Positions 6,859-63,947 are shown, counted from the stretch's first letter. The stretch: 64,000 nt of DNA from Antechinus flavipes (GCF_016432865.1 NC_067398.1:81220001-81284000); one strand, 5' to 3'. Made by a program: numbers and translations. Notes: generated by a model from the letters alone, not told the origin.

Positions 6859-7092
6859 NNNNNNNNNNNNNNNNNNNNNNNNNNNNNNNNNNNNNNNNNN
6901 NNNNNNNNNNNNNNNNNNNNNNNNNNNNNNNNNNNNNNNNNNNNNNNNNNNNNNNNNNNNNNNNNNNNNNNNNNNNNNNNNNNNNNNNNNNNNNNNNNNN
7001 NNNNNNNNNNNNNNNNNNNNNNNNNNNNNNNNNNNNNNNNNNNNNNNNNNNNNNNNNNNNNNNNNNNNNNNNNNNNNNNNNNNNNNNNNNNN
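6859..7092. other. Assembly gap (234 N)
   Basis: Run of N. Confidence 1.
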
Positions 7093-10958: not shown

Positions 10959-11188
10959 NNNNNNNNNNNNNNNNNNNNNNNNNNNNNNNNNNNNNNNNNN
11001 NNNNNNNNNNNNNNNNNNNNNNNNNNNNNNNNNNNNNNNNNNNNNNNNNNNNNNNNNNNNNNNNNNNNNNNNNNNNNNNNNNNNNNNNNNNNNNNNNNNN
11101 NNNNNNNNNNNNNNNNNNNNNNNNNNNNNNNNNNNNNNNNNNNNNNNNNNNNNNNNNNNNNNNNNNNNNNNNNNNNNNNNNNNNNNNN
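10959..11188. other. Assembly gap (230 N)
   Basis: Run of N. Confidence 1.
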
Positions 11189-11535
11189 ATAGGGGGGAGA
11201 GAGAGAGAGAAGGAGGGAGAGAAAGGAAAGAAGGAGGGAAAGAGGGAAAGAGAGAGGAGAGAGGGAGGAGAGAGAGAGGAAAGAGAGGGAGACAGAGAGA
11301 AAAGAGACAGAAAAAGAGAAGAAAAAAGAGGAGAGGGGAGGAGAGAGAAAAAGAAAAGAAAGGAAAGAAGGGAGGGAGGGAAAAAGGAAGAAAGGAGGAA
11401 GAGAGAGAATGAGAAATGGTAAGAAAGTTAGGAAGGAAAGAAGGAAGGAAGGAAGGAAGGAAGCAAGGAAGGAGGGAAGGAAGGAAGTAGGGAAGCAAGG
11501 AAGGGAGTGAGGGAAAAGTAGAAGAGAAAGAGAAG
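11189..11535. repeat. Polypurine (GA/GGAA) low-complexity tract
   Basis: ~345 bp almost entirely A/G on +, including (GGAA)n arrays; abuts an assembly gap. Confidence 0.95.
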
Positions 11536-39075: not shown

Positions 39076-39657
39076 NNNNNNNNNNNNNNNNNNNNNNNNN
39101 NNNNNNNNNNNNNNNNNNNNNNNNNNNNNNNNNNNNNNNNNNNNNNNNNNNNNNNNNNNNNNNNNNNNNNNNNNNNNNNNNNNNNNNNNNNNNNNNNNNN
39201 NNNNNNNNNNNNNNNNNNNNNNNNNNNNNNNNNNNNNNNNNNNNNNNNNNNNNNNNNNNNNNNNNNNNNNNNNNNNNNNNNNNNNNNNNNNNNNNNNNNN
39301 NNNNNNNNNNNNNNNNNNNNNNNNNNNNNNNNNNNNNNNNNNNNNNNNNNNNNNNNNNNNNNNNNNNNNNNNNNNNNNNNNNNNNNNNNNNNNNNNNNNN
39401 NNNNNNNNNNNNNNNNNNNNNNNNNNNNNNNNNNNNNNNNNNNNNNNNNNNNNNNNNNNNNNNNNNNNNNNNNNNNNNNNNNNNNNNNNNNNNNNNNNNN
39501 NNNNNNNNNNNNNNNNNNNNNNNNNNNNNNNNNNNNNNNNNNNNNNNNNNNNNNNNNNNNNNNNNNNNNNNNNNNNNNNNNNNNNNNNNNNNNNNNNNNN
39601 NNNNNNNNNNNNNNNNNNNNNNNNNNNNNNNNNNNNNNNNNNNNNNNNNNNNNNNNN
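39076..39657. other. Assembly gap (582 N)
   Basis: Run of N. Confidence 1.
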
Positions 39658-46369: not shown

Positions 46370-47360
46370 TGAAAACTGGCCGTCCGAGGCAATTCCTTCT
46401 TACACCCATTTTACAACGGGGGAAACTGGGGCTGGGGAGATGTAGGGCGTCGCGCGGGGTCACCCTGGGAAGTGTCGATCACCGCCCGAGGTTCAGGCCC
46501 AGAGGAGGGTGGTTGGCGCCCTTCTCAACCGACCCATTTTACGAGGAAAACAGGAAACAGCGGGGGCCACGGGCGGGGTTGGCTTCCGGACACTTCCGAG
46601 GCCACGGTTCAACTCGGTCCCCCAGCGGAAGAGCAGGGTCCGGACCTTTTCTTCCCGGAACGTTTTTTCTTGAGGCCTAGGACTCCGGGGGGAAGGTTTT
46701 CCTATAGGATTTTCCTCCCACGCGGCCTTTATTTCCCACACTGCCCCGCGCTTCTTCCTTCTTTCTCTCTCTAGCTTTGGGCCTCTTCCGGTTGGTGGAG
46801 TGCCTGTTGGCGCAGGCTGCGGTGAGAGGCTATGGGGGTCGTATCCGGCGCCATCCGTGGCCTGGATGGGACATGGGGGGTCGAGCGAATAGCTCGGAGG
46901 ATAATGGAGGAGTTCTGAGCCGGGGGTCAGGCCGGGCGGGACCGGCGGGTGGGGGGCAGATCGGGATTGAGCCCGGGAGAGTCGGGGGTAGCTGAGAGGC
47001 CTGGGCCGGGGTGAGAGGGAGTTTGGGGCCGGGATGAGAAGGAGTTCGGGCCCCGGGGCATCGAGAAGGGAAGGAGAGGCGCAGACCGGGCTGGTACCGT
47101 GCGTCGTTTAGCGTAATCTCAGGGCCGCTACGGGAGTCTCGGGAGCAGGACGGGATTGGGAGCCCACGCGGGGCGCCCTTCTTAAGGAGGGAGTCCCACC
47201 GTCGGCAGAACCGCAGAGGGGGCCCCAACCCTCCCATCTCCCCGCGCGGCTCTGCCCCCCCGGTGCCAGATGGGGCAAACCCGAGTCCTCTCCCATGGGA
47301 GTCCTAGCTAGAGCTCCCAAACAACTGCTGGAGATCCTCTAACGCCCCGCTGTTGTGCCC
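46370..47360 (+). promoter_or_regulatory. RPL29: CpG-island promoter of RPL29
   Basis: CpG-dense segment spanning exon 1. Contains GC box GGGCGGGGT (46571-46579), ETS/GABP-type sites CTTCCGG (46583), CACTTCCG (46591), GCGGAAG (46625) and CCGGAA (46655), and a YY1-like CGCCAT (46849) in intron 1. This is typical ribosomal-protein promoter architecture. Boundaries approximate. Confidence 0.85.
46782..46821 (+). other. RPL29: RPL29 non-coding exon 1 with TCT initiator / 5' TOP start
   Basis: CCTCTTC at 46782-46788 matches the TCT consensus YC(+1)TYTYY, predicting a TSS at C46783. Donor G|GTGAGA at 46822. A second TCT match lies at 46760-46766, so the exact TSS is uncertain. Confidence 0.75.
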
Positions 47361-47783
47361 TAAACTAGCCCAAATTTGAACACTCATTTCCCTTTCATTC
47401 TGTGGTATATTTGGGGCTTTAGCGATCGGTAAATATTTACTGATCGTTTACTTGGGTGCTGGCTAGAACAGCAGAAGACGGGCCCTGTCCTCGAGGAGCT
47501 CAGTTAATTGGAGCTAGCCTGCACACGGATGAATGGGAAATCTTCGGGAAAGGATGGCACTAAAATGAAGAGATGTTGGGTTTCCTGTGGAAACTGAGGA
47601 TTTTTTAAATTGGGACTAGACTCGGGAAACTGGTTCAACTCCGGCTTCATGACCCAGAAAACATCATACATACACAGCATACTTAAGCTGTGAAGATGAG
47701 GGATTGGGCTTCATGGGGGTCACAGAGCTCTGTGATCCTAAATCCTAAAATCGTTGTCATTTTTCTCCCCTACAGGTGCAAAG

Positions 47784-47820
47784 ATGGCTAAGTCTAAGAA
47801 CCATACCACCCACAATCAAT
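47784..47820 (+). CDS. RPL29: 60S ribosomal protein L29 (eL29), coding exon 1 (gene exon 2)
   Basis: Acceptor TACAG| at 47775. ATG 47784 encodes MAKSKNHTTHNQ + 1 nt, followed by donor GTAAGT at 47821. Identical to the eL29 N-terminus. Confidence 0.98.
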
Positions 47821-48280: not shown

Positions 48281-48345
48281 CACGAAAATGGCACAGAAAT
48301 GGCATCAAGAAACCTAGATCACAGAGATATGAGTCTCTGAAAGGG
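48281..48345 (+). CDS. RPL29: eL29 coding exon 2 (gene exon 3)
   Basis: Polypyrimidine tract and TAG| at 48280. 65 nt encoding (S)[21 protein letters not shown], donor GTGAGT at 48346. Phase is consistent: 37+65=102 nt. Confidence 0.98.
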
Positions 48346-50520: not shown

Positions 50521-51954
50521 ATCTCTGGTGATTAGACATAGAAGAAACTCTAGAGATTGTGTAGTCCAAAAAAATTAAGCTTTTTATTAATAAGCCACAT
50601 GATAAGAAATCCATGTGGTTTTGAATCAAATGAATCTAAAGATTACGTTCAGCTTCAATTAAAAGACAAAATAATTGAAGCTGACCAGCATGGTGCCTGA
50701 TAAGTCTCTTATACAGTCTTAAGTCAGTTGAGGGGGTGTTTAGGACCAGTCACTAATTTATAGGCCAATTAGGTTTGTTCAGGTTTAATGTCTTCATTTT
50801 GTAGGTAGGAAAGTGGAGGTAGTTGTCTCAAACATTATATAGCACAGTAGTTACAGACCTGGACTGGGCCTTAGGTTCATGGGACTCCATATATAAGTGC
50901 TTATTCTGTGCAAAGCACTGGGAATACTACTGCCTCCCAGAGATCTCAGGTTCTCTGGCTAGGGATAGGTGTAAACATGGAAATATTTTAAATATATAAA
51001 ATGTATGTACAGAATAGGGAGAGGGTAGTCTCCTGGAAGAGAAGCTATTAGGCAGTAAACATCTTTTAATACCTGCTGTATGCCAGGTACCATGCTACTA
51101 AGCATTGGGGTGAAAGATAGTCCCTGTCTTCAAGAAGCTCACTCTTTCGGGGGAAGCATGCAAACAAGCTATATACAGGATAAATTGAAAGATAGCTGGG
51201 GAGATTTGGAAAAGGTGACATTTAAACTGAACCCTAAAAAACGGGAAGGGAAATTTAAGAGGCAGAGGAGAGGAAGAAAATTCTGGGTGTGAGGATAGAG
51301 AGATATGGAGAAAACAATAAGCATAAGAATAGCAGAGAGGTAGAAAGAGGACAGATGAATGTTTTACATGCCAAAATAAGATTAAGACAGATTCAGGAAT
51401 TTAAATGCCAAATATAAGACTGGATGGATCCTGGGGCCACATCATTTTGGCAGCTACTTGGAGCTAGAAATTTGTTGCCTTTTGATTAGAAAGAGCAGCA
51501 AGGATAGAAGTGAATTGGGCTGGCGACTATGAGAAAAGTGCTTATATGCAAGAGGTACCGTCAGTCTATTCTGATCACACCTGGATATGTGGGGCATTAA
51601 TCCCACGTGGCAGCAACTCTCCTTCAAGAATAGAGGTTGAGGGTGACACTGGGTAAGATTGCTGGTCTGAAAACTGGACACCTGTGGTGCCTTGACAGTA
51701 ACAGGACAGTTGTAGAGGCTGATTGCTGCTTTGGGAAGTGTGGTGGTCTTGGAGATTTCCAGAAGGCCAGTGTAGGTGTGATGCTGGAGCTCCAGAGAGT
51801 AACCAGACCTGGGTCAAATGTGTGGAGGTGTTTGTTGAATAGATGGCAGCTGGTGGGTAGTCAGATGTGGAGAGGAGAGGGCCCAGGATGAGGCCCAGAG
51901 CTCCTGGCCAGGGCGAAGTTGTAAAGACATTTCTGTGCATTGCTTGTCTTGCAG

Positions 51955-52596
51955 GTTGACCCTAAGTTTCTGAGAAACATGCGCTTTGCCAAGAAACACA
52001 ACAAGAAGGGGCTGAAGAAGATGCAGGCCAACAATGCCAAAGCCATCAAGGCCCGAGCAGAGGCCATCAAGGCCCTGAGCACTAAGGCCTCGAAGGCCAA
52101 GCTTCTCAGGCCCAAGATTTCCAAGGCCACTGCCCGCCGTGCTGGCAACAAAATGGCCACCAAGCGTCCAGCCCCTAGAGTTGGCATCAAACGCCCAGGC
52201 CCCAAGATCACAAAGCCCGATTCTAAGGTTGCCAGAACCACTGAACCCAAGACAGCCAAGCCCACCGATCCCAAGGCCACGAAGCCCACTAAGCCCACTG
52301 ACCCCAAGACCGCCAAGCCCACTGATCCTAAGGTCACCAAGTCTGGCGCCAAGGTCACCAAATCTGATCCCAAGGCTACCAAACCTGGCCCCAAAGTCAC
52401 CAAGTCCGACACCAAGGTCGCCAAACCCGATCCCAAGGCAGCCAAGTCTGATCCCAAGGCAGCCAAGTCCGATCCCAAGGCTGCTAAGTCTGGTTCTAAG
52501 GCCACAAAGCCCAGTGATTCCAAGGCTGCTAAGCCTGCCGAGTCCAAACCCAAAGATGCTGGGGCTAAAGCTTCTGGTCCCAAGCCTTCAAAATAA
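51955..52596 (+). CDS. RPL29: eL29 terminal coding exon (gene exon 4) with long repeat extension; full protein 247 aa
   Basis: Acceptor TTGCAG| at 51954. Encodes [41 protein letters not shown] followed by a K/P/A/T/S/D-rich tail. Tandem stops TAA TAG at 52594-52599. Confidence 0.97.
52207..52593 (+). repeat. RPL29: Coding 21/24-nt tandem repeat in RPL29 exon 4
   Basis: GATCCCAAGG recurs at 52429, 52450 and 52471 (period 21). Perfect 9-nt duplication AAGCCCACT at 52282-52299. Confidence 0.9.
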
Positions 52597-52682
52597 TAGA
52601 TGCTTCAGGACAGAAGGACTTGTTTAAAACCTACGCCACCGTTTTTTCCTAGCCAGGGTATGATTATTCACTATTTTGTACA

Positions 52683-52688
52683 AATAAA
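52683..52688 (+). terminator. RPL29: RPL29 polyadenylation signal
   Basis: AATAAA in the context CTATTTTGTACAAATAAA, 86 nt after the stop, with an upstream TGTA (CFIm-type) element. Confidence 0.85.
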
Positions 52689-55600
52689 GGAAATGGTGAG
52701 TCATAAGAATTAGTCTTTCTGTTGTCAAATCTAGGAGTGGAATGGAGAGGGGGGTCTGCAAGCCCAGCTGGGGAGCCCTCAGCATTGTGGAGTTCTTAAA
52801 GCACTCAGTCTTTTAAAGGACGTAATACATTATCAGCAATTTGTAGATGAGGAAATGTAGGTTCGGAGTAATTGTGAAACACACACAGTTTCACATGAGG
52901 AGGTTGGGACCTTGGCAAAGTAACAGGCAAAAAATGTCTCTTTGGTATAAACCTTTGGCTCTGCTTATTTACTGTTTGACTTGAAGCAGATCTCAGTCTC
53001 TTTAGCCTGAATTTCTGTAAAATGTGAAGGGATTGGACTGGTTGAGAACCTTCCAAGTTCCTATAGTTCTTGGTAAAAATCACAGAATCATATTAAGAGT
53101 GAGCGGCTGTTTTAAAAGATGGCTTCCGCTCATCTCTGAGCGTGAGTGGAAGCCACTCTGAGGAGAATGCAGATTCAGGCTGCCAATAGAAAACTTTAGT
53201 GGGAAAGGCACAGAGTTTGGAGCCTAGGGACTTTGTGCTCTCTGTTACCCTAAGTGACCACATCTGTACCTGTTGTCCATACACACACAATCCATTCTGG
53301 ACCTCCATTTCTTCACCTTCATTGAGGTTATAGACTGACCCATCAAGTTCATCCCACATGTGATCCAAAGCCATCAGAACTTAAAGCCAGAATACTTTGA
53401 AGGCCACAGTTCCCTTCACCCCATCCCTCAAAGTGTCTGTTCCATACAATTACTTCCACATTCTGTGCCTCCAGGGAAGGGCGGGCAGCAAGCAAAGAAT
53501 GTAGCTATTTACCACCCTGCATCCAATATCCCTATTCTGCAGGTCCCTGGGGAGCTCTGAAGAATGTGGTCACCAGTGTTCTGGTCTTGAACATTAACTA
53601 TCATTAACTCCTAAGTGTAGCACTAAGTCACCAGAAACCTGGTTTCTCACATTTAAAAGCATGAGACCTGCCTTCCTTATTTGGTCTTGGAACTTTTAAA
53701 GACTACTTGTCCAAGACTTCAGTCCAGCCAGAAATGCATTAATACCTAGTTCTAGATAAGTATATGGACTCAAAAATCACTGTTTTTGAGTTACATAAAA
53801 GAATTTGGTGATTTTTCTAATCCCAAACCTTCAGTTTGGGAAGCTCTCAATCAGGAACAATAATGCTCATACTGCTGGACTAAAAACCAGATAAAGGGAT
53901 CTGGGGAAAGAAAATTCTCAGCAACCCCAGAAAGCTGGTCATTTTCTCTGGGAGCAAACAAAAACACTCAGCAAAGGAAAAGTTATGGCCTGGAAGACCC
54001 TTAGCAATTTGTATGCTGGGATTGAGAGTTTGGGCTGTGGATAATGGTAGAGGAAAGTAGGGGCTTGGATCCTTGAATAGGGCTTCATCCTGGGAATCTA
54101 AGCTCCCCTTTGCTGGAAACCATCAATCCAAGCTGGATTTTGCTTTGCCTCTGAGCTGCTTCAACCCTCCTTCGCTTCCATATCACTCTGTGACTGGGCT
54201 CTGCCTTCTGGATGAGCTTCTGCTTTAAGATCGAGGGCAGAGTTTGGACTAGGCCACTTTGAGCAGTTCCCCTCTCTTTGTTGGTTCATACTTAGTTTTT
54301 CACTTCCGTGTCAGGGGTGCCTAAAAAAGAGGATCTGCTTCCTCCCCCTTCGAGCATGCTCCTTAGCCCTGAGATAAGGGTTTTTCCTTGGATTTCTGTC
54401 TCTCAGCTTCATCCCTCTCCCTGGGCTCTGAATTCAGTGCCTCATAGCCTTGCCTTGCCTTACTCCCAGGTCACACACACTGATGTCTCCTTAAAATGAA
54501 AATTTGGTGGGGCTTTTCCTGCATTTACTGGACCCAGTTTTTGGAGGTTTGACCCTTTGAGCCAATGCAACCAATTGCAGCATCTGCCTTCCAGGGGCCT
54601 AAGGTTCCCTGGAATTCATTGAAACTCATTCAGACTCCAAGGTCTCTAGCATTTCAAAATCTTGTGGGAAGATTTGTTTTATATTGGTTTGGAGGGGTGC
54701 TAGGGAATCACAGGTTCCAGGTAATATTACTCTCCTTTCTCTTTGAGGACAATCCACAAGCATTTATTATGTACTAAGTACTGAGCCAGGCCTAAATGTT
54801 AGTACTCCTCCAGAAGCTTGTATTCTGAGTACACGGTAAACACATAGAAGTAATTTAGGTAATTTGGGGAGATTAACAGAAGTAGCTGCATGCCATTGGG
54901 CACAGATGGGGTCCCTGAACTGAGTCCTGAGAAAATAGGATTTCTAGAGGGGGGGAAGAGCAGGTGCTGCATTCAGGCACGGGGTACAAAAGTGCCAGTA
55001 GAACAAACACAGGAGGTAGAAAAATGAGACCACATTGACCTAAGGAAGCCTGCCATGGACATCTCTCCCTTACTGGATAAATCCCAATGGCTCTTTATTA
55101 TCTGTAGCATTGATATAAGGATAATTTATTTCTTAATTTACATTTCCACAGTGTACAAAGTATCACCACCATCATCTCGGAAGGTAAGTGCTTACAAGTT
55201 CATGATTCACATTTTGCAAGTAAGAGCAGAGCCTCCTAACCAGACATTCTTGACATGTTCTTGCCCAAAGTCAGAGGCAGCATTCAGTCTCCCACCTCCA
55301 ATCTCCCTCTAGCAGCATCAGAAAGCTGGAGTTAGGACAGACCAATCAACCACCCTAAAGAGCAGGATCTCTGCCAGAAAGTGGGAAATGATCAGAAGCT
55401 CCCAATGCCTTCCCCTGCCGACAGGATACACATTGAGATTCCAACCCCTTGTGAGCATCCCCGTGCCATAACATTTTTTCCCCCAGGCTCATCTGGGAGT
55501 GCTTTTCTGCTCCAGATCCAAATCCCAACTCCTCTCTTCAAGGCAACCCCCTCCAAGAGCACCAGTGAGCTCCTCCATGCATTTCTAAGTTCTTTCCTCT

Positions 55601-57287: not shown

Positions 57288-57452
57288 TTAGCACTCGTTG
57301 GGCAGGGCCGGCAGGCTGGCCAGGGCAGGCAGCAGGCGGGCGTAGATGTCAATGCCCCGAAGGAACACGGCTTCGTTCAGGAACTCGTTGTGGTCGTGCA
57401 GCAGGACGGGGGTGTGGTTCATCGGGGAGAAGCCCAGCGCTGGGACCCCTGC
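57288..57452 (-). CDS. ACY1: Aminoacylase-1 terminal exon 15
   Basis: 165 nt, [57 protein letters not shown]. Contains the LHDH zinc-ligand His. Exons 4-15 splice in frame to 355 aa. Confidence 0.96.
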
Positions 57453-57659
57453 CTGCAAGCATGTGGGTGCATCAGGGCAGGGCTCACCCTCCTGCCTGGT
57501 GGAGCCAGCCTGGCCTCTCCCCCCCGCCGTGCCCCCTGGAATGGGGCACCCTCGGTTCCCTCAGACGGAAGTCCAGGACCCGCCTGCCCATCCCAATCCG
57601 CACGCCGGCCGGTTGCCTCCCACCGCCCCGATCCCAAAGCGGAGGCTGGAGGGACTCAC

Positions 57660-57720
57660 GGCTCGGAGGTACCGGCTGTCGGTGGCAGCTGGGAAGATCT
57701 CGGGCTTCACACTGAGATTC
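57660..57720 (-). CDS. ACY1: Aminoacylase-1 exon 14
   Basis: 61 nt, NLSVKPEIFPAATDSRYLRA; GTGAGT donor. Confidence 0.96.
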
Positions 57721-57835
57721 CTGGCAGGGGAAGACACGAAGGTCTTTACCAGTGGGGAGGGGGCGTCCCACCAGCCGACCGCATCAAAGGGAGGAAGGGA
57801 AGGACGGCAGGGGACCGAAGGCGGGTCTTACTTAC

Positions 57836-57915
57836 ATCTCCCTACAGACTCTGCTGAACTCGGCCCACCACGGGTTGGAGTCGTCTGTGGCTGTGATTCG
57901 GGGCTCTGTCCATTT
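57836..57915 (-). CDS. ACY1: Aminoacylase-1 exon 13
   Basis: 80 nt, [26 protein letters not shown](M); GTAAGT donor. Confidence 0.96.
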
Positions 57916-58098
57916 CTGGGGGGGAGCAGATAAAGCAAGGATCAGAGAAAGTCCATCCCCGATCCCTCTCAGGGGAATGACCCCCAAGCTCGCGGGGACA
58001 AACATCCACAAACATGGGAGCACGCCTGGGACCACTCACTGCTCCAGACGGGAAAAAGGCTCCCAGGTGGGGGGGGGGGGTTCAGGGTGGCCACGTAC

Positions 58099-58167
58099 CT
58101 GGTGAAACTTGTAGGTGACCCCTTCCCCAGCCTCCCGGCACCAGCCCTGAATCTGCTCCTCAAAGGC
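58099..58167 (-). CDS. ACY1: Aminoacylase-1 exon 12
   Basis: 69 nt, AFEEQIQGWCREAGEGVTYKFHQ; TAG acceptor, GTACGT donor. Confidence 0.95.
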
Positions 58168-58494
58168 CTAGGAGACACAACAGAGAGAGGAGGTAGCGCC
58201 CCCGGCCCTGGCATCCGACCCCCGGAGCCGCTGCTGACAAGGGGAGGGCGAGGGGAGGAGGAGTCCGGGAGGGACAACAGCCCCAGTCCCCGCTCTCTAG
58301 GAGCCCCCCCAGAGCTACAGCAAGCACGGCCATCCTCAGCTGGGGGATCAGGAGAGGGCCGGGAGAGGGGGGGGCCAAGTCATGGCAGCCAGCAAGTCCT
58401 AGGGGGGAGCCCCGAGGCCCCCGCCGGGAGCAGAGTCAGTCGGGGACTGGGGGGGGCCAGCCTGAGTCAGGAAGGCGCCTCCCTGCCCCCGCAC

Positions 58495-58639
58495 CTTGAG
58501 GTCCACATCTGGAGCAACTCGAAAGTCAAAGCTGGCGCTCATGGTGGCCGGCACCACATTGAAGGCAACTCCTCCCTTCAGGATGGTCAGGTTCACCGTG
58601 GTCACGGCCCCCAGGCTCAGGTTGGGGTTGGAGCGGAGC
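58495..58639 (-). CDS. ACY1: Aminoacylase-1 exon 11
   Basis: 145 nt, [48 protein letters not shown] (dimerisation domain). Confidence 0.96.
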
Positions 58640-58769
58640 CTGGGGAAAGGAGAACGCTCAACCCCGGCCCTTCCCCACGGCCCCGACCCAAGGGCCCCCG
58701 GCGAAGAGGAGGGGGAGGAAGGCCGGTCCAGGGGCAGGAACCAGGGAGGGAGGGAGGGGAAGCTCTCAC

Positions 58770-58819
58770 CGCTGATTCTCCTGCTCTCGGAACTTCAGCA
58801 CGGAGGTGACCACCTTATG
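58770..58819 (-). CDS. ACY1: Aminoacylase-1 exon 10
   Basis: 50 nt, [16 protein letters not shown](R); CAG acceptor, GTGAGA donor. Confidence 0.95.
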
Positions 58820-58912
58820 CTGTAGAGCCCCCCGGGGGGGAAAGGGGGGTCAGCCAGGGTGCTCCACTGACAGCCCGCCCCCTCCTCCGGCTTCCCAACC
58901 CCCTCAACTCAC

Positions 58913-58986
58913 CAGCTTCTCTGCGGCCGTATTCTCAATGAAACGCGAGCCGTGGCCTGGGTTCCCAGAGCTGGTGACGCACAGCC
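58913..58986 (-). CDS. ACY1: Aminoacylase-1 exon 9
   Basis: 74 nt, (W)LCVTSSGNPGHGSRFIENTAAEKL; contains the PGH motif. Confidence 0.96.
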
Positions 58987-59125
58987 CTGGTGGGCAGAGG
59001 GGGCCGGAGGGAGAGGCTCGTTAGTCTTCCCCAGCCGACTAAGGGACCCCCCAGGGAAGGGAAGGGCCCCACCCTGGACCTGAGCTCCCCCAACTTCCCC
59101 GGCACCAGGGAAGGGCTCTACTCAC

Positions 59126-59182
59126 ACCAGGGGCTCCGCTCGCTGTAGAAGACCGTGAAGGTTTCTGTAGGGCTAGCCAAGC
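59126..59182 (-). CDS. ACY1: Aminoacylase-1 exon 8
   Basis: 57 nt, GLASPTETFTVFYSERSPW; TAG acceptor, GTGAGT donor. Confidence 0.96.
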
Positions 59183-59244
59183 CTACGCAGGGAGGAGTGG
59201 GATGTCAAGAGGGAGTCTGTCCCAGCCCAGACTCAGGCCACTCA

Positions 59245-59450
59245 GGCCCAGACCCAGGCCACTCAGACCCCCACCCAGCGCCGGGACCCAGGCCCAGACC
59301 CAGGCCACTCAGACCCCCAGCCAGCGCCGGGACCCAGGCCCAGACCCAGGCCACTCAGACCCCCACCCAGCGCCGGGACCCAGGCCCAGACCCAGGCCAC
59401 TCAGACCCCCACCCAGTGCTGGGACCCAGGTCACTCAGACCCCCCCCCCC
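59245..59450. repeat. 46-bp GC-rich minisatellite in ACY1 intron 7
   Basis: Four near-identical units GGCCCAGACCCAGGCCACTCAGACCCCCACCCAGCGCCGGGACCCA starting at 59245, 59291, 59337 and 59383, plus partial units. Confidence 0.95.
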
Positions 59451-59453
59451 TCA

Positions 59454-59672
<219 letters not shown>

Positions 59673-59706
59673 CTACTCCCTTACTCTCAACCCCCAAGAG
59701 TCATAC

Positions 59707-59783
59707 CTGGGACAAATGTCAGGTGAATGGTCCTGGGAAAAGACTTCCCTTCTGCTTTTAGCCTCCGAACAGCCTCCAGGTAC
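59707..59783 (-). CDS. ACY1: Aminoacylase-1 exon 6
   Basis: 77 nt, [25 protein letters not shown]; CAG acceptor, GTATGA donor. Confidence 0.96.
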
Positions 59784-59900
59784 CTGGGGGGACAAGGGTG
59801 AGACACAGAGTCCATTCAAGAGTGAGGCAGGTATGGAGTCCAGATAATCCAAGGTCCAAGGTCCCACAACTGACCCCCCACCAAGAATCTCAGGTTTTCC

Positions 59901-60232
59901 CTGAGAAAGACGTGGGAACTGAGTGTGGACCTCTCTTTCTGTTGTTGTTTGCTTGCATTTTGTTTTTTTCTCAGTTTTTTTCTTTCTTGATGCAATTTTT
60001 CTTGTACAGCAAAGTAACTATAAATATGTATACATATATTGGATTTAACATATACTTTAACATATTTAACATGTATTGGTCAACCTGCCATCGGGGGGAT
60101 GGGATGGGATGGGATGGGGAGGAGGGGAAAAATTGGAACAAAAGGTTTGGCAACTGTCAATGCTGTAAAATTACCCATGCATATAACTTGTAAATTAAAA
60201 GCTTTAATTTAAAAAAAATAAAAAATAAAAAA
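59901..60232 (+). mobile_element. L1 3' end in ACY1 intron 5 (antisense to gene)
   Basis: L1 3'UTR plus A-tail; perfect 18-bp TSD AAGAATCTCAGGTTTTCC (59883-59900, 60233-60250). Confidence 0.9.
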
Positions 60233-60599
60233 AAGAATCTCAGGTTTTCCAAGGATCTGGGGTGGAGAGGACATCTCAGAAGATCTAGTTCTAAGTACCC
60301 TTTTAACATCCCAAAGATCCATTAAAAGGAGAATATAAAACTTCTTCCAGTCTCCACCCAAAATGGCCAGTGATGAGAAACCCAGTGATTTGTGAAGCAG
60401 CCTGTTCCGCTTGGGGGCAGCTGTCCTTTTATCAAAAGGACATCTACCTCTTTGATCTTGTACCCAGAGCTCCCAATTCTGGCCTCCTGGTAATAGCAGA
60501 ACCAGCCTTGTGACTTTCAGTGACAGCCCCTCAGATACTCGTAGATAGCTCCCACCTCAAGCAACAACCCAGCCACAAACGTGAAGGGCCTACTATGTG

Positions 60600-61360
60600 C
60601 CAACCACACCAGCACTCCCGAGGACCTTATTTTGCCAAGTCTTTTCTTGGCCAGGCTAAATGATACTAATTCCTTCGGCCTATAATCTTGTGACTTGCTA
60701 TGGGTGGTCACCTTTCTCTGGTTAGGCCCTCCCTAAAGTGTGGGGCCTGCTAGATTGTGATTGTCATTGTCTTTTGCCTTTTTCGGTCTCCTTGTGTTCC
60801 GCACAGTGCCTGACATAGAGAAGATATCTAATAAATGTTTACTGACTGACTCTTCTAAATTCAGTCTGAGCAGGGAAGAGAACTGACTACGGTGCTATCA
60901 TTTCCCTCCACATGCACATTATGACTCTGCCAATATGGCCTAAAATTCTATTACCCCCCTGCAGTCTGCCCCATCCCACTGTTAACTCCCAGGGAGCCTT
61001 TGGTCTGCCAAAACCCCATCTCCTGTAAGCGACTTGAAAACAGGGACTATTTCCACATCTCTCCATCCGGTACTTGTACGGTTGGTTTGGTTTTTTAATC
61101 CAGGTAGGATTTTGCCTTTGCCTCCTATTAAATTGTATCTTCTTTTGAACTTAATTTTGTCCCCCAGCATATTAACTTTCTATCATCTGCAAATCTGAGA
61201 ATCATACCACCTTTGCTTTCATACAATTCATTAGCCAGCACCAGATAGAATGAAGACATACTAAAAGGTACCATCAATTACCAGCAGGAAGCAGAAGCAA
61301 GTTGATCCAGCGTCAGCAGTGTGATAGAGCAGCTGGCAAAAGCTCATGCTCTCCTAGACA
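60600..61360 (-). mobile_element. L3/CR1 fragments in ACY1 intron 5
   Basis: Antisense CR1-like motifs, interrupted by L2/MIR tail sequence. Confidence 0.55.
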
Positions 61361-61381
61361 GCATTAAGAGTACCGGAGAGG

Positions 61382-61716
61382 CTACACCCAGGGAAAGAAC
61401 TCTGGGAGATGACTGTGAACCACTACATAGAATTCCCAGTCCCTCTATTTTTGTCCATCTGCATTTTTGATTTCCTTCACAGGCTAATTGTACAATATTT
61501 CAAACTCCAATTCTTTTTGTACAGCAAAATAACTGTTGGGACATGTATGCTTTAACATCCTTAACATAGTATTGGTCAACCTGCCATCAGGGGGAGGGGA
61601 TGGAGAGAAGGAGGGGAAAAATGGGAATAAAAGGTTTGGCAAGTGTCAATGCTATAAAATCACCCATACATATATCTTGTAAACAAAAAGCTATAATAAA
61701 AAAATTAAAAAAAAAA
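61382..61716 (+). mobile_element. L1 3' end in ACY1 intron 5 (antisense to gene)
   Basis: L1 3'UTR plus A-tail; 16-bp TSD AAGAGTAC(C/T)GGAGAGG (61366-61381, 61717-61732), with a single CpG-type transition. Confidence 0.85.
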
Positions 61717-62414
61717 AAGAGTACTGGAGAGGGGACAGTTCAATTTATGTCCTGGACAAATCCCTTCAACAAGACCCAAGCTCAAATATAGCCTCAGAGA
61801 CTAACTGTGTGATGCTTGGTAAGACATTTGACTTGTCTGCCTCAGTTTCTTCAACTGTAAAATGGGAATTATAATAGCACCTATCTCTCAGGGTTGTGTG
61901 AGAATCAAATGAGATTATATTTGTAAAACACTTAACACAGTGCCCGACACATAGGTTCTATATAAATGCTAGCTATTTTTTAAAATTAGTCTGAAGAAGA
62001 GGCTAATATCAAATATTAGAGGCACTGAATTGTGGAAAGCAGATCAGACTGATTCTTCCTTTGTGGGCCTGGAGATATTTACTCAGGTTGATTTGACCCA
62101 TTATAAGGAGAAACTCTTAAGAATTTGCACTATCTTGGGCAGAAGAAAGGAGCTGTCTCCCCAGGCAAGCCTTGAGTTTCCTGTCCCTGTAGATCAAGGA
62201 TCAAGCTGAGCTTGGGAACATGTTGGGGATAAAGACTGACAGAAGGGACATGAGCAGGTAAACTCCTGTGTAGGTAGCCTGAGACTCAATGATCCCTTCT
62301 GATTCCCAGATTCTGACTCAATCAAAGCCCAGAAGAGGAGACGGGGTTATGTGGAGAGAGAAAGAGGTATGGTGGTATCCAGTCTTCCCAGTGGATGTGG
62401 ATTCAGAGACTCAC

Positions 62415-62509
62415 TGAATGCCAACACATTTCATGTCCTGAGCACCCCGAGCAAAAATGTTCCCTTGGGCATCCTTGAAGGCTTCAAAAGGATCATGATT
62501 CCAGTGTTC
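62415..62509 (-). CDS. ACY1: Aminoacylase-1 exon 5
   Basis: 95 nt, [31 protein letters not shown](Q). Contains the ARGAQDMK zinc-ligand motif; donor GTGAGT. Confidence 0.96.
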
Positions 62510-63842
62510 CTGAGGACAAAAAGAGCAAAGGGTCGAAGGGAAAGTTCCTGCTTACCTCCCATTCTTGTGATTTGTCCATAATACCTTTCCCCCAGCTTCC
62601 TCCATCTTTCACCTCTTTCAGGAAGCCTCCCTGGAAGGCTAGGTCTCCAGGCCCCCTACAGCAGCCTGGAATTTATTGTTCCCTCGTTTTAAACAGAACT
62701 CTCCCTACCAGCGCTCACATTAAGTGCCTATGTGTGTCATATATGACAATGCCCCCATTCCTCATTTAATCAGCACCCCTTCTCTAAACCATTCCCAGCT
62801 CTGCACACCCTTCCATCCAGGGCAGTTCCTTCCTGACCTCTGGCTACCCTAAGTAGCTTCCTTCCACTTCAGCCTTTATTCACATGGTTCTCAGGAGGAA
62901 CAGTGGACGGGCCTGGGCTTACACAACCCACAACAAAGGAACCACCTGGGAAAAGGCCTGAAGGAAGAAGATGAAATATTGGATATGGGGAGCAGACAAT
63001 ACGTCAAGGGGATGAGTGTCAAATGAGACTCGGAGAAAGGCAAATGGAGCCCCTTTTCAGAGGGCTTTCAATGCCATGCTCACGAGTTTACACAGATTTG
63101 TATTTTATCCAAGAGACAAAAGAACATGGAAAGGGTCAGAGCAGTGAATGGACATGTTGCATTTGTGCTAAGAGCTCCCAGGTTCAAGTTCCAATATTTC
63201 CTCTGTAAAATCAGGGAATTGGACTAAATAGGCGCCAAAGTCCCTTCTGCTTTTAAATCTGTGATCAGTAGTCAGTGCGCAGCTATTGAGAATTGGGGCA
63301 TTGGAAAGTGGGTAATAGCTCTGGTGTCTCCTTTGGATCATTTGTATGGAGCATTTTGCTACTCACACCACGTAGCTGCTAAGTCAGAAAGCCTCTGCTT
63401 CTGCTAACTGGGATCTTACCTAACAGCGCCCACAGTCATTCTTGCTGTCTCCCGTACTCTCCCCTATTTTAGATACACTGCTCTAGTCTCCAGCAATCAG
63501 GCTATGAGCTCTTGGACCATGTTATCTTTTTAGAGCTGCAAGACCTGAGTTCTTGTCTTGGCTTTGACCCCCTACTCAGTGACGGTGGACATATTTTTTA
63601 ATCCCCTCTAATCCTCAGTTGTTTCATCTATAAAAAGGGGATCATATTCACACAACCTGTTCCATGATGTGGTCGTGAGGAAAGCCCATAAGAAGCTTTC
63701 AGGCAGAAGGTGCTCATTGGTAGGTGGGCTTACTTGCCAAGCTTCCCTGAGTGACAAGGTGCTGGACCTTGCAACATGGAATCATGGGGAAGGATGCCAG
63801 AAGAGCCCTCCACCACCCCATCTTGGGGCCCTTGACATTTAC

Positions 63843-63947
63843 CTTGAAGACAGGCACCACATCGGTATGGGAGTTAAGCACAAGGGAACGGAGCCTGGGA
63901 TCTGTGCCTCTCCAGGTCAATATTGTCACCACTCGGTCTGGGGCCAC
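63843..63947 (-). CDS. ACY1: Aminoacylase-1 exon 4
   Basis: CAG|...|GT boundaries, 105 nt, [35 protein letters not shown]. Contains the M20 peptidase zinc-ligand motif SHTDVVP. Exons 1-3 lie beyond the window; exon numbering follows the human gene from memory. Confidence 0.96.

Follow-up and report, generated by a model that had tools for sequence, protein, structure and literature searches.

A lysine-rich tandem-repeat tail on ribosomal protein eL29 of Antechinus flavipes and other marsupials

Here, we report that the RPL29 gene of Antechinus flavipes, located in a 64,000-nt stretch of genomic DNA (hereafter the window), encodes a ribosomal protein eL29 of 247 residues whose last 129 residues form a periodic, lysine-rich tail. 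In our judgement, it is probable that this tail is a disordered, polycationic and length-variable product of in-frame slippage, which has been kept since the marsupial ancestor under weak selection on its frame, composition and ends and which acts, if at all, through non-specific charge. Both eL29 and ribosomal proteins at large are known to acquire tails of this kind, and the marsupial tail is one more case.

Structure and locus of the RPL29 gene

The RPL29 (eL29) gene is intron-containing and occupies 47.8-52.7 kb on the plus strand of the window. Its coding sequence (744 nt, 247 aa) is distributed over three coding exons and split by two GT-AG introns, which confirms the 247-aa spliced reading frame given in a preliminary description of this DNA. 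The parts of the gene are as follows:

46783-46822, plus: candidate non-coding exon 1, proposed from sequence reading; pyrimidine-rich TOP-like start CCTCTTCC, end ...GGCTGCG, followed by a GTGAGA donor
47776-47820, plus: exon 2; 8 nt of leader, ATG at 47784, codons 1-12 (MAKSKNHTTHNQ) and the first base of codon 13 (coding part 47784-47820); acceptor ctacag, donor GTAAGT
48281-48345, plus: exon 3; residues 13-34, the heart of the eL29 domain; acceptor TAG, donor GTGAGT
51955-52596, plus: coding part of exon 4; acceptor CAG, stop TAA, then TAG
51955-52077, plus: conserved part of exon 4; residues 35-75 (VDPKF...AEAIKAL), common to all mammalian eL29
52078-52206, plus: basic, non-repeat, marsupial-specific linker; residues 76-118, end ...GIKRPGPK
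52207-52593, plus: repeat tail; residues 119-247
52322-52492, plus: most regular block of the tail; 21-nt (heptad) units, 8.1 copies (TRF)
52438-52479, plus: near-identical adjacent 21-nt copies (starts 52438 and 52459); AAKSDPK twice, one synonymous base apart
52594-52704, plus: stop and 3' UTR of approximately 110 nt; AATAAA at 52683-52688, putative mRNA end at about 52704

The candidate exon 1 sits within a G+C-rich block at 46-48 kb, and its end (...GCTGCG) together with the start of exon 2 (GTGCAAAG) parallels the 5' leader translated in the wombat copy P0006 (...SGCCGVKM). A search for the exon 1 pattern performed at chance level.

Membership in eL29 (PF01779, a 40-residue N-terminal domain) was established with the exons scored separately. 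The product of exon 3 alone matched Pfam PF01779 (Ribosomal_L29e) with 43.9 bits (cut-off 27) over profile positions 12-32 of 40, and the start of exon 4 matched the eL29 chains of the PDB in phmmer with E = 1e-18. No family was found in the Pfam scan of the exon 4 product (E <= 1), since the 40-residue domain ends eight residues into exon 4.

The minus strand carries ACY1 exons between about 57.3 kb and a point past 63.9 kb; ACY1 and RPL29 converge, which we take to be the arrangement at the human RPL29 locus as well. Judged by its GT-AG introns at conserved positions and by this neighbourhood, the gene in the window is the functional parent RPL29 and not a retrocopy; the copies found in databases are intronless. 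ACY1 (aminoacylase 1; 57300-63900, minus) was recognised by its peptides, approximately 4.5 kb separate the 3' ends of the two genes, and a G+C-rich block at 56-60 kb overlaps ACY1.

None of the N runs of the window (6859-7092, 10959-11188 and 39076-39657) touches RPL29. The second of them adjoins a microsatellite block of the purine-rich (GA)n/(AAGG)n type (10959-11504), and the marked skew in GC and AT at 10-12 kb is explained by this block. A Rfam scan of the whole window gave no match. Ten of its large ORFs were likewise without a Pfam match, the expected outcome where mammalian exons are short.

Composition and periodicity of the tail

Residues 119-247 have the composition K34 P21 A20 T16 S13 D11 V5 G5 E2 R1 I1. 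The 129 residues include 13 Asp/Glu, no F, W or Y and no Leu, and carry a net charge of +22; the 34 Lys, the 13 Asp/Glu and the lack of aromatic and Leu residues counted in the preliminary description match these numbers exactly. The tail can be parsed into 17 imperfect units (ten of 7 aa, six of 8 aa and one of 11 aa) with the consensus (A/V)(A/T)K(S/P)(T)(D/G)PK, and it closes with a 23-residue end that is conserved among marsupial copies.

At the nucleotide level, TRF reported periods of 21, 42 and 63 nt at 52322-52492 (scores 133-183) and of 24 and 33 nt at 52238-52341. At the protein level, self-identity of the tail amounted to 41/122 at lag 7 and 42/115 at lag 14 (z 6.1 and 6.8), above every one of 5000 composition-preserving shuffles (mean approximately 18, maximum 31-32). 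The periodic array noticed before is thus real, although the earlier figure of about 16 units becomes 17 in our parse. In descriptive terms, the tail is a lineage-specific Lys-rich tandem-repeat extension of a ribosomal protein.

Two further long open frames run across the repeat, one on the minus strand (51861-52583, 240 aa) and one in the +2 frame (52139-52627, 162 aa). Such frames on the opposite strand or in a shifted frame are by-products of a repeat that is poor in stops.

Codon-level variation among repeat units

When eight in-register 21-nt units were compared, variation was seen at every third codon position (7/7), compared with 5/14 of the first and second positions. The pooled pN/pS among units was 0.30 in the eL29 frame versus 0.94 and 1.32 in the shifted frames, values that come from very short units and non-independent pairs and carry no significance test. 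They bear out the earlier statement that units differ mostly at silent sites, and the three codon spellings of DPK on which it drew are all present.

The pooled pS among units was 0.59, which implies that most units are old. The only sign of recent duplication or conversion is the pair starting at 52438 and 52459, which by its sequence looks recent.

Distribution of the tail among marsupials

With the exon 4 product as query, a word search identified the tail in marsupials of at least eight genera (including Trichosurus, Vombatus, Macrotis, Dromiciops, Monodelphis, Gracilinanus, Notamacropus and Petaurus), where it belongs to eL29 or eL29-like proteins. When the tail alone was used, a word search covering proteins of 117-373 aa returned 17 matches; all of the named ones were marsupial eL29 copies, two were unnamed contig translations, and no histone was among the 17. 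The presence of the tail in both American (Monodelphis and Gracilinanus) and Australasian lineages implies that it is older than the marsupial crown group. The preliminary description had viewed the tail as rebuilt in one lineage; it is common to all marsupials examined and not a dasyurid novelty.

Alignment of the marsupial copies revealed that the linker and the C-terminal end are conserved, while the number of units between them is variable. Tail lengths range from about 74 to 134 residues, the 129 residues of the window being among the longest, in a scan of 16 copies of which five had no usable anchors (P0005, P0012 and P0015, and wrong anchors for the Vombatus copies P0004 and P0014). The K-rich, aromatic-poor composition is retained among the copies, with a net charge of +11 to +35. 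Between the window and the sugar glider protein P0214, the linker and first two units are identical at 47/58 positions and the last 23 residues at 22/23. This cross-species comparison rests on retrocopies and one RefSeq isoform (P0214). In both P0214 and P0124, Pfam shows PF01779 only.

P0214 is the Petaurus breviceps eL29-like isoform X3 of RefSeq (178 aa), in which both tail ends and the frame are kept and the middle units are absent. Its shorter array could represent a shorter allele, slippage by library preparation or reverse transcriptase, or cryptic AAG|GT...AAG splicing. The unit edges read AAG|GT...AAG, and therefore an allele, slippage or a weak cryptic intron would all resemble a GT-AG intron to an aligner. 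As far as the P0214 record goes, at least one marsupial has shorter arrays, be it in transcripts, in alleles or through artefacts of alignment.

Several other copies deserve mention. The intronless Gracilinanus agilis copy P0017 (250 aa) has an intact frame and a 134-residue tail in which Asp is almost gone and the net charge is +35; either this retrocopy is young or constraint may still act on it. A short Logan contig carries a frameshifted copy, P0021. Three copies of Trichosurus and Petaurus (P0001, P0013 and P0018) are named 'histone H1.3-like', 'H1.03-like' and 'H1.4-like' by NCBI, and P0001 carries PF01779. These automatic names of eL29 retrocopies are annotation artefacts caused by the lysine-rich tail.

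Evidence from retrocopies and sequencing runs

All marsupial copies with a readable gene span are intronless (745, 759 and 753 nt for 200, 238 and 250 aa). Retrocopies arise from mature mRNA. In the retrocopies L002 (Dromiciops) and L001, both exon junctions are contiguous, with 29/30 bases matched across the exon 3/4 junction in L002, and L002 still has the 3' UTR and the AATAAA, with an A-run immediately following the position that matches about 52704 of the window. Intronless, polyA-bearing retrocopies with the tail imply that spliced, polyadenylated RPL29 mRNA carried the whole tail in marsupial germ lines. At the level of sequence, they show the tail to be present in spliced mRNA of other marsupials; in Antechinus flavipes, we infer that the tail is translated. 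The segment 52150-52720 is contained in 22 sequencing runs from seven studies, none of them recorded as RNA, and every sampled word of it is found in four small runs of one study.

L002:7001-7860 is a processed RPL29 retrocopy of Dromiciops gliroides within an intron of an abhydrolase-type gene, beside a gene of the ERG2/Sigma1R family. Its exon-3-derived part is broken by an insertion of approximately 150 nt ending in an A-run, and its tail is intact.

Predicted structure and position on the ribosome

The tail is predicted to be disordered. AF2 with the marsupial alignment gave a mean pLDDT of 57.8 and a pTM of 0.12, with secondary structure confined to the first 30 of 182 residues. The periodic, basic and disordered arm put forward in the preliminary description agrees with an array that is in frame, periodic, of net charge +22 and predicted to be disordered. 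Comparison of the tail with the PDB gave nothing below E = 2.6 and no histone H1, and the ESM Atlas contained no look-alike, its best score of 0.75 being meaningless. With regard to phosphorylation-type motifs, there are no SP/TP dipeptides in the tail and three S/T-x-x-D/E sites.

Protein eL29 is located at the tunnel exit, where it is touched by Sec61 (PMC4081569). PDB entries with a partial eL29 sequence stop at 75-121 residues; taking these partial sequences as the modelled part, such tails would be unresolved in structures. By analogy with eutherian structures, and from general knowledge, the marsupial tail would be positioned near the tunnel exit of the 60S subunit.

Repeat arrays in eutherian eL29

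Beyond ...AEAIKAL, no significant similarity was found between marsupial and eutherian eL29 (BLASTP E = 1.3-2.4). The LAYIAHPKLG and KAKAKAK-type segments, present in dog, rabbit, bat, golden mole and rat, are absent from the window product, as the preliminary description had stated. Its rough alignment of KRPAPRV with human KRARARI is without statistical support, the HMMER core alignment reaching only through the KIPK-type segment. We also considered the marsupial tail as the eutherian tail read in another frame and rejected it: the other frames give unrelated S/P/L/R-rich and Q/H/G-rich strings.

Several eutherians have arrays of their own in the same protein:

Rabbit: eL29 of 245 aa, about nine KPKAQAQx octads
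Hare: eL29 of 239 aa, the same array type as rabbit
Miniopterus: eL29 of 207 aa, seven APAPKGAQ; tail net charge +12
Molossus and Hipposideros: eL29 of 181 aa, four APAPKGAQ
Golden mole: eL29 of 208 aa, five STKAPAKA
Lemur: SKAQ runs in eL29

A long, periodic and basic arm of eL29 is therefore not unique to marsupials, since rabbit, hare, bats and golden mole have 8-residue arrays of their own. Rabbit eL29 is the chain deposited in 67 PDB entries (e.g. 5lzs). The tail D+E count is 13 in the window versus 0-3 in rabbit, golden mole and Miniopterus. The marsupial array is analogous and not homologous to the arrays of rabbit, hare, bat and golden mole.

A survey that aligned RPL29/eL29 of eleven vertebrates, including opossum and platypus, placed the human conserved domain at alignment residues 1-53 (PMC7671327). 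Our literature search on RPL29 and marsupials found no paper on the marsupial RPL29 tail.

Origin and possible role of the tail

In the explanation that we prefer, the universal eL29 core (residues 1-75) is followed by a marsupial-specific extension of 172 residues, made of the 43-residue basic linker and the 129-residue array. The array would have arisen before the split of American and Australasian marsupials and would have gained and lost 21/24-nt units through unequal exchange or slippage in frame, its frame and ends being retained while the number of units drifted (approximately 74-134 residues among copies). Close to the tunnel exit, the disordered tail of charge +22 would hang from eL29 at the solvent-facing surface of the 60S subunit and would most likely act non-specifically by its charge, in rRNA shielding, as an aid to nucleolar import or assembly, or both. 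Selection probably concerns composition and frame and not the exact sequence. Any function of the tail, the charge-based role included, is proposed here from general knowledge.

A second possibility is that the array is neutral baggage, a slippage-prone coding minisatellite in a dispensable, exposed tail, whose apparent conservation would come solely from the removal of frameshifts and stops by selection, the protein being abundant. Marsupial copies differ greatly in their number of units (tails of 74-134 aa), and unrelated units have expanded independently at the same place of eL29 in several eutherian lineages. Human cells tolerated a 33-kDa HaloTag or mKeima fused at the endogenous locus to the C-terminus of eL29 (bioRxiv 10.64898/2026.09.26.754687), and eL29 as a whole is cited as dispensable in yeast, with a viable knockout in mouse (as cited in PMC7671327). 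On the other hand, the in-frame pN/pS of 0.30 with variation concentrated at third positions, the 22/23 identity of the last 23 residues between the window and sugar glider, and the K-rich, aromatic-poor composition kept by marsupial copies at a net charge of +11 to +35 all argue against pure neutrality, and we regard it as rather unlikely, if still a serious candidate. It is much harder to accept that the array is no part of the protein in Antechinus flavipes at all, either because its length is an assembly artefact or because transcripts skip it through AAG|GT...AAG pseudo-introns. The sugar glider isoform X3 (P0214, 178 aa), which has no middle of the array, points in this direction. However, with one near-identical pair excepted, the units have diverged too far (pS 0.59) to be the result of collapse or expansion errors, the gene contains no N runs, the sole GTRAGT in exon 4 falls after the polyA signal and is retained in the retrocopy, retrocopies of five genera have long arrays, and all sampled words of 52150-52720 occur in four small runs of a single study. 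Together these make an artefact or skipping extremely improbable.

At the other extreme, the DPK heptads could form a specialised appendage, that is, a binding array (for an rRNA expansion segment, or for heparan sulfate and other polyanions) or a platform for Lys/Ser/Thr modification, which would be a lineage-specific property of the marsupial ribosome. Heparan-sulfate binding is reported for eutherian eL29 (HIP), but the KAKAKAK-type heparin-binding segment of eutherians is absent here. The array has been kept through the whole of marsupial history with conserved ends, an Asp stands regularly beside Lys in each unit, unlike in eutherian arrays, and eL29 lies beside the Sec61 contact site (PMC4081569). 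A modification platform sits poorly with the absence of SP/TP sites and the presence of only three S/T-x-x-D/E sites, the unconserved unit number argues against a defined partner, and neither PDB nor ESM Atlas offers a look-alike of the tail. Such an appendage is therefore very unlikely in our opinion.

If there is a bolder meaning to the tail, it would be that of a selected mixed-charge (Lys and Asp) heptad brush beside the Sec61 docking site, kept through marsupial history and tuning contacts with the membrane or with rRNA expansion segments in a way unlike that of eutherians, the arm having been convergently re-invented in mammals because it is advantageous. We consider this proposal distinctly doubtful. 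Returning to the slippage product under weak selection, the C-terminus of eL29 appears as a hot spot, where mammals have repeatedly grown long, basic and periodic tails from unrelated units. With these tails, nature supplies a clean series in which to ask whether length and charge matter at the tunnel-exit face. In marsupials, marsupial cell lines included, the ribosomes would contain an eL29 approximately 55% longer than the recorded human protein of 159 aa, and annotation pipelines misname its retrocopies 'histone H1-like'. These practical lessons are modest, and the marsupial tail opens no new mechanism.

Comparison with known systems

The closest counterpart is rabbit eL29. From residue 119, its tail consists of 127 aa with 29 Lys and a net charge of +27, compared with 129 aa, 34 Lys and +22 in the window, and both consist of tandem units (8-residue ones in rabbit) in the same protein, past the ordered part of eL29. 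The units themselves differ: KPKAQAQx is Ala/Gln-rich and nearly without acidic residues, whereas xxK(S/P)(D/G)PK of the window has one Asp per unit. In addition, rabbit shows no detectable similarity to the marsupial tail (BLASTP E = 1.3) and keeps LAYIAHPKLG...RARARIA, which marsupials lack. The rabbit array is of independent origin. The arrays of bats, golden mole and lemur resemble the marsupial one in being in-frame, short K/A/P-rich units in the C-terminal tail of eL29 with lineage-specific copy number; they are shorter and less basic, built from other units and restricted to narrow lineages, whereas the marsupial array spans orders and is old.

With linker histone H1, the likeness is to its C-terminal domain, which is K/A/P/S/T-rich and disordered like the tail of the window. 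H1 is approximately 40% Lys with almost no acidic residues, whereas the window tail is 26% Lys and about 10% acidic; the tail also lacks a winged-helix globular domain (no Linker_histone in the Pfam scan of exon 4) and (S/T)PXK sites. The term 'histone-H1-like' used in the preliminary description is hence justified by composition and not beyond it, as the Linker_histone domain, SP/TP sites and matches to H1 are all absent.

Lys-rich, H1-like extensions of ribosomal proteins have been described in insects, at the N-termini of RpL22 and RpL23a and at the C-terminus of mosquito RpS6 (PMC1934995; PMC11764897). They concern other proteins and other ends, and sequence similarity to the C-terminal region of H1 has been reported for them, whereas the resemblance of the window tail is compositional only. 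What insect RpL22, RpL23a and RpS6 share with marsupial eL29 is a lineage-specific, Lys-rich and low-complexity extension that nearly doubles the protein and is tolerated by the ribosome.
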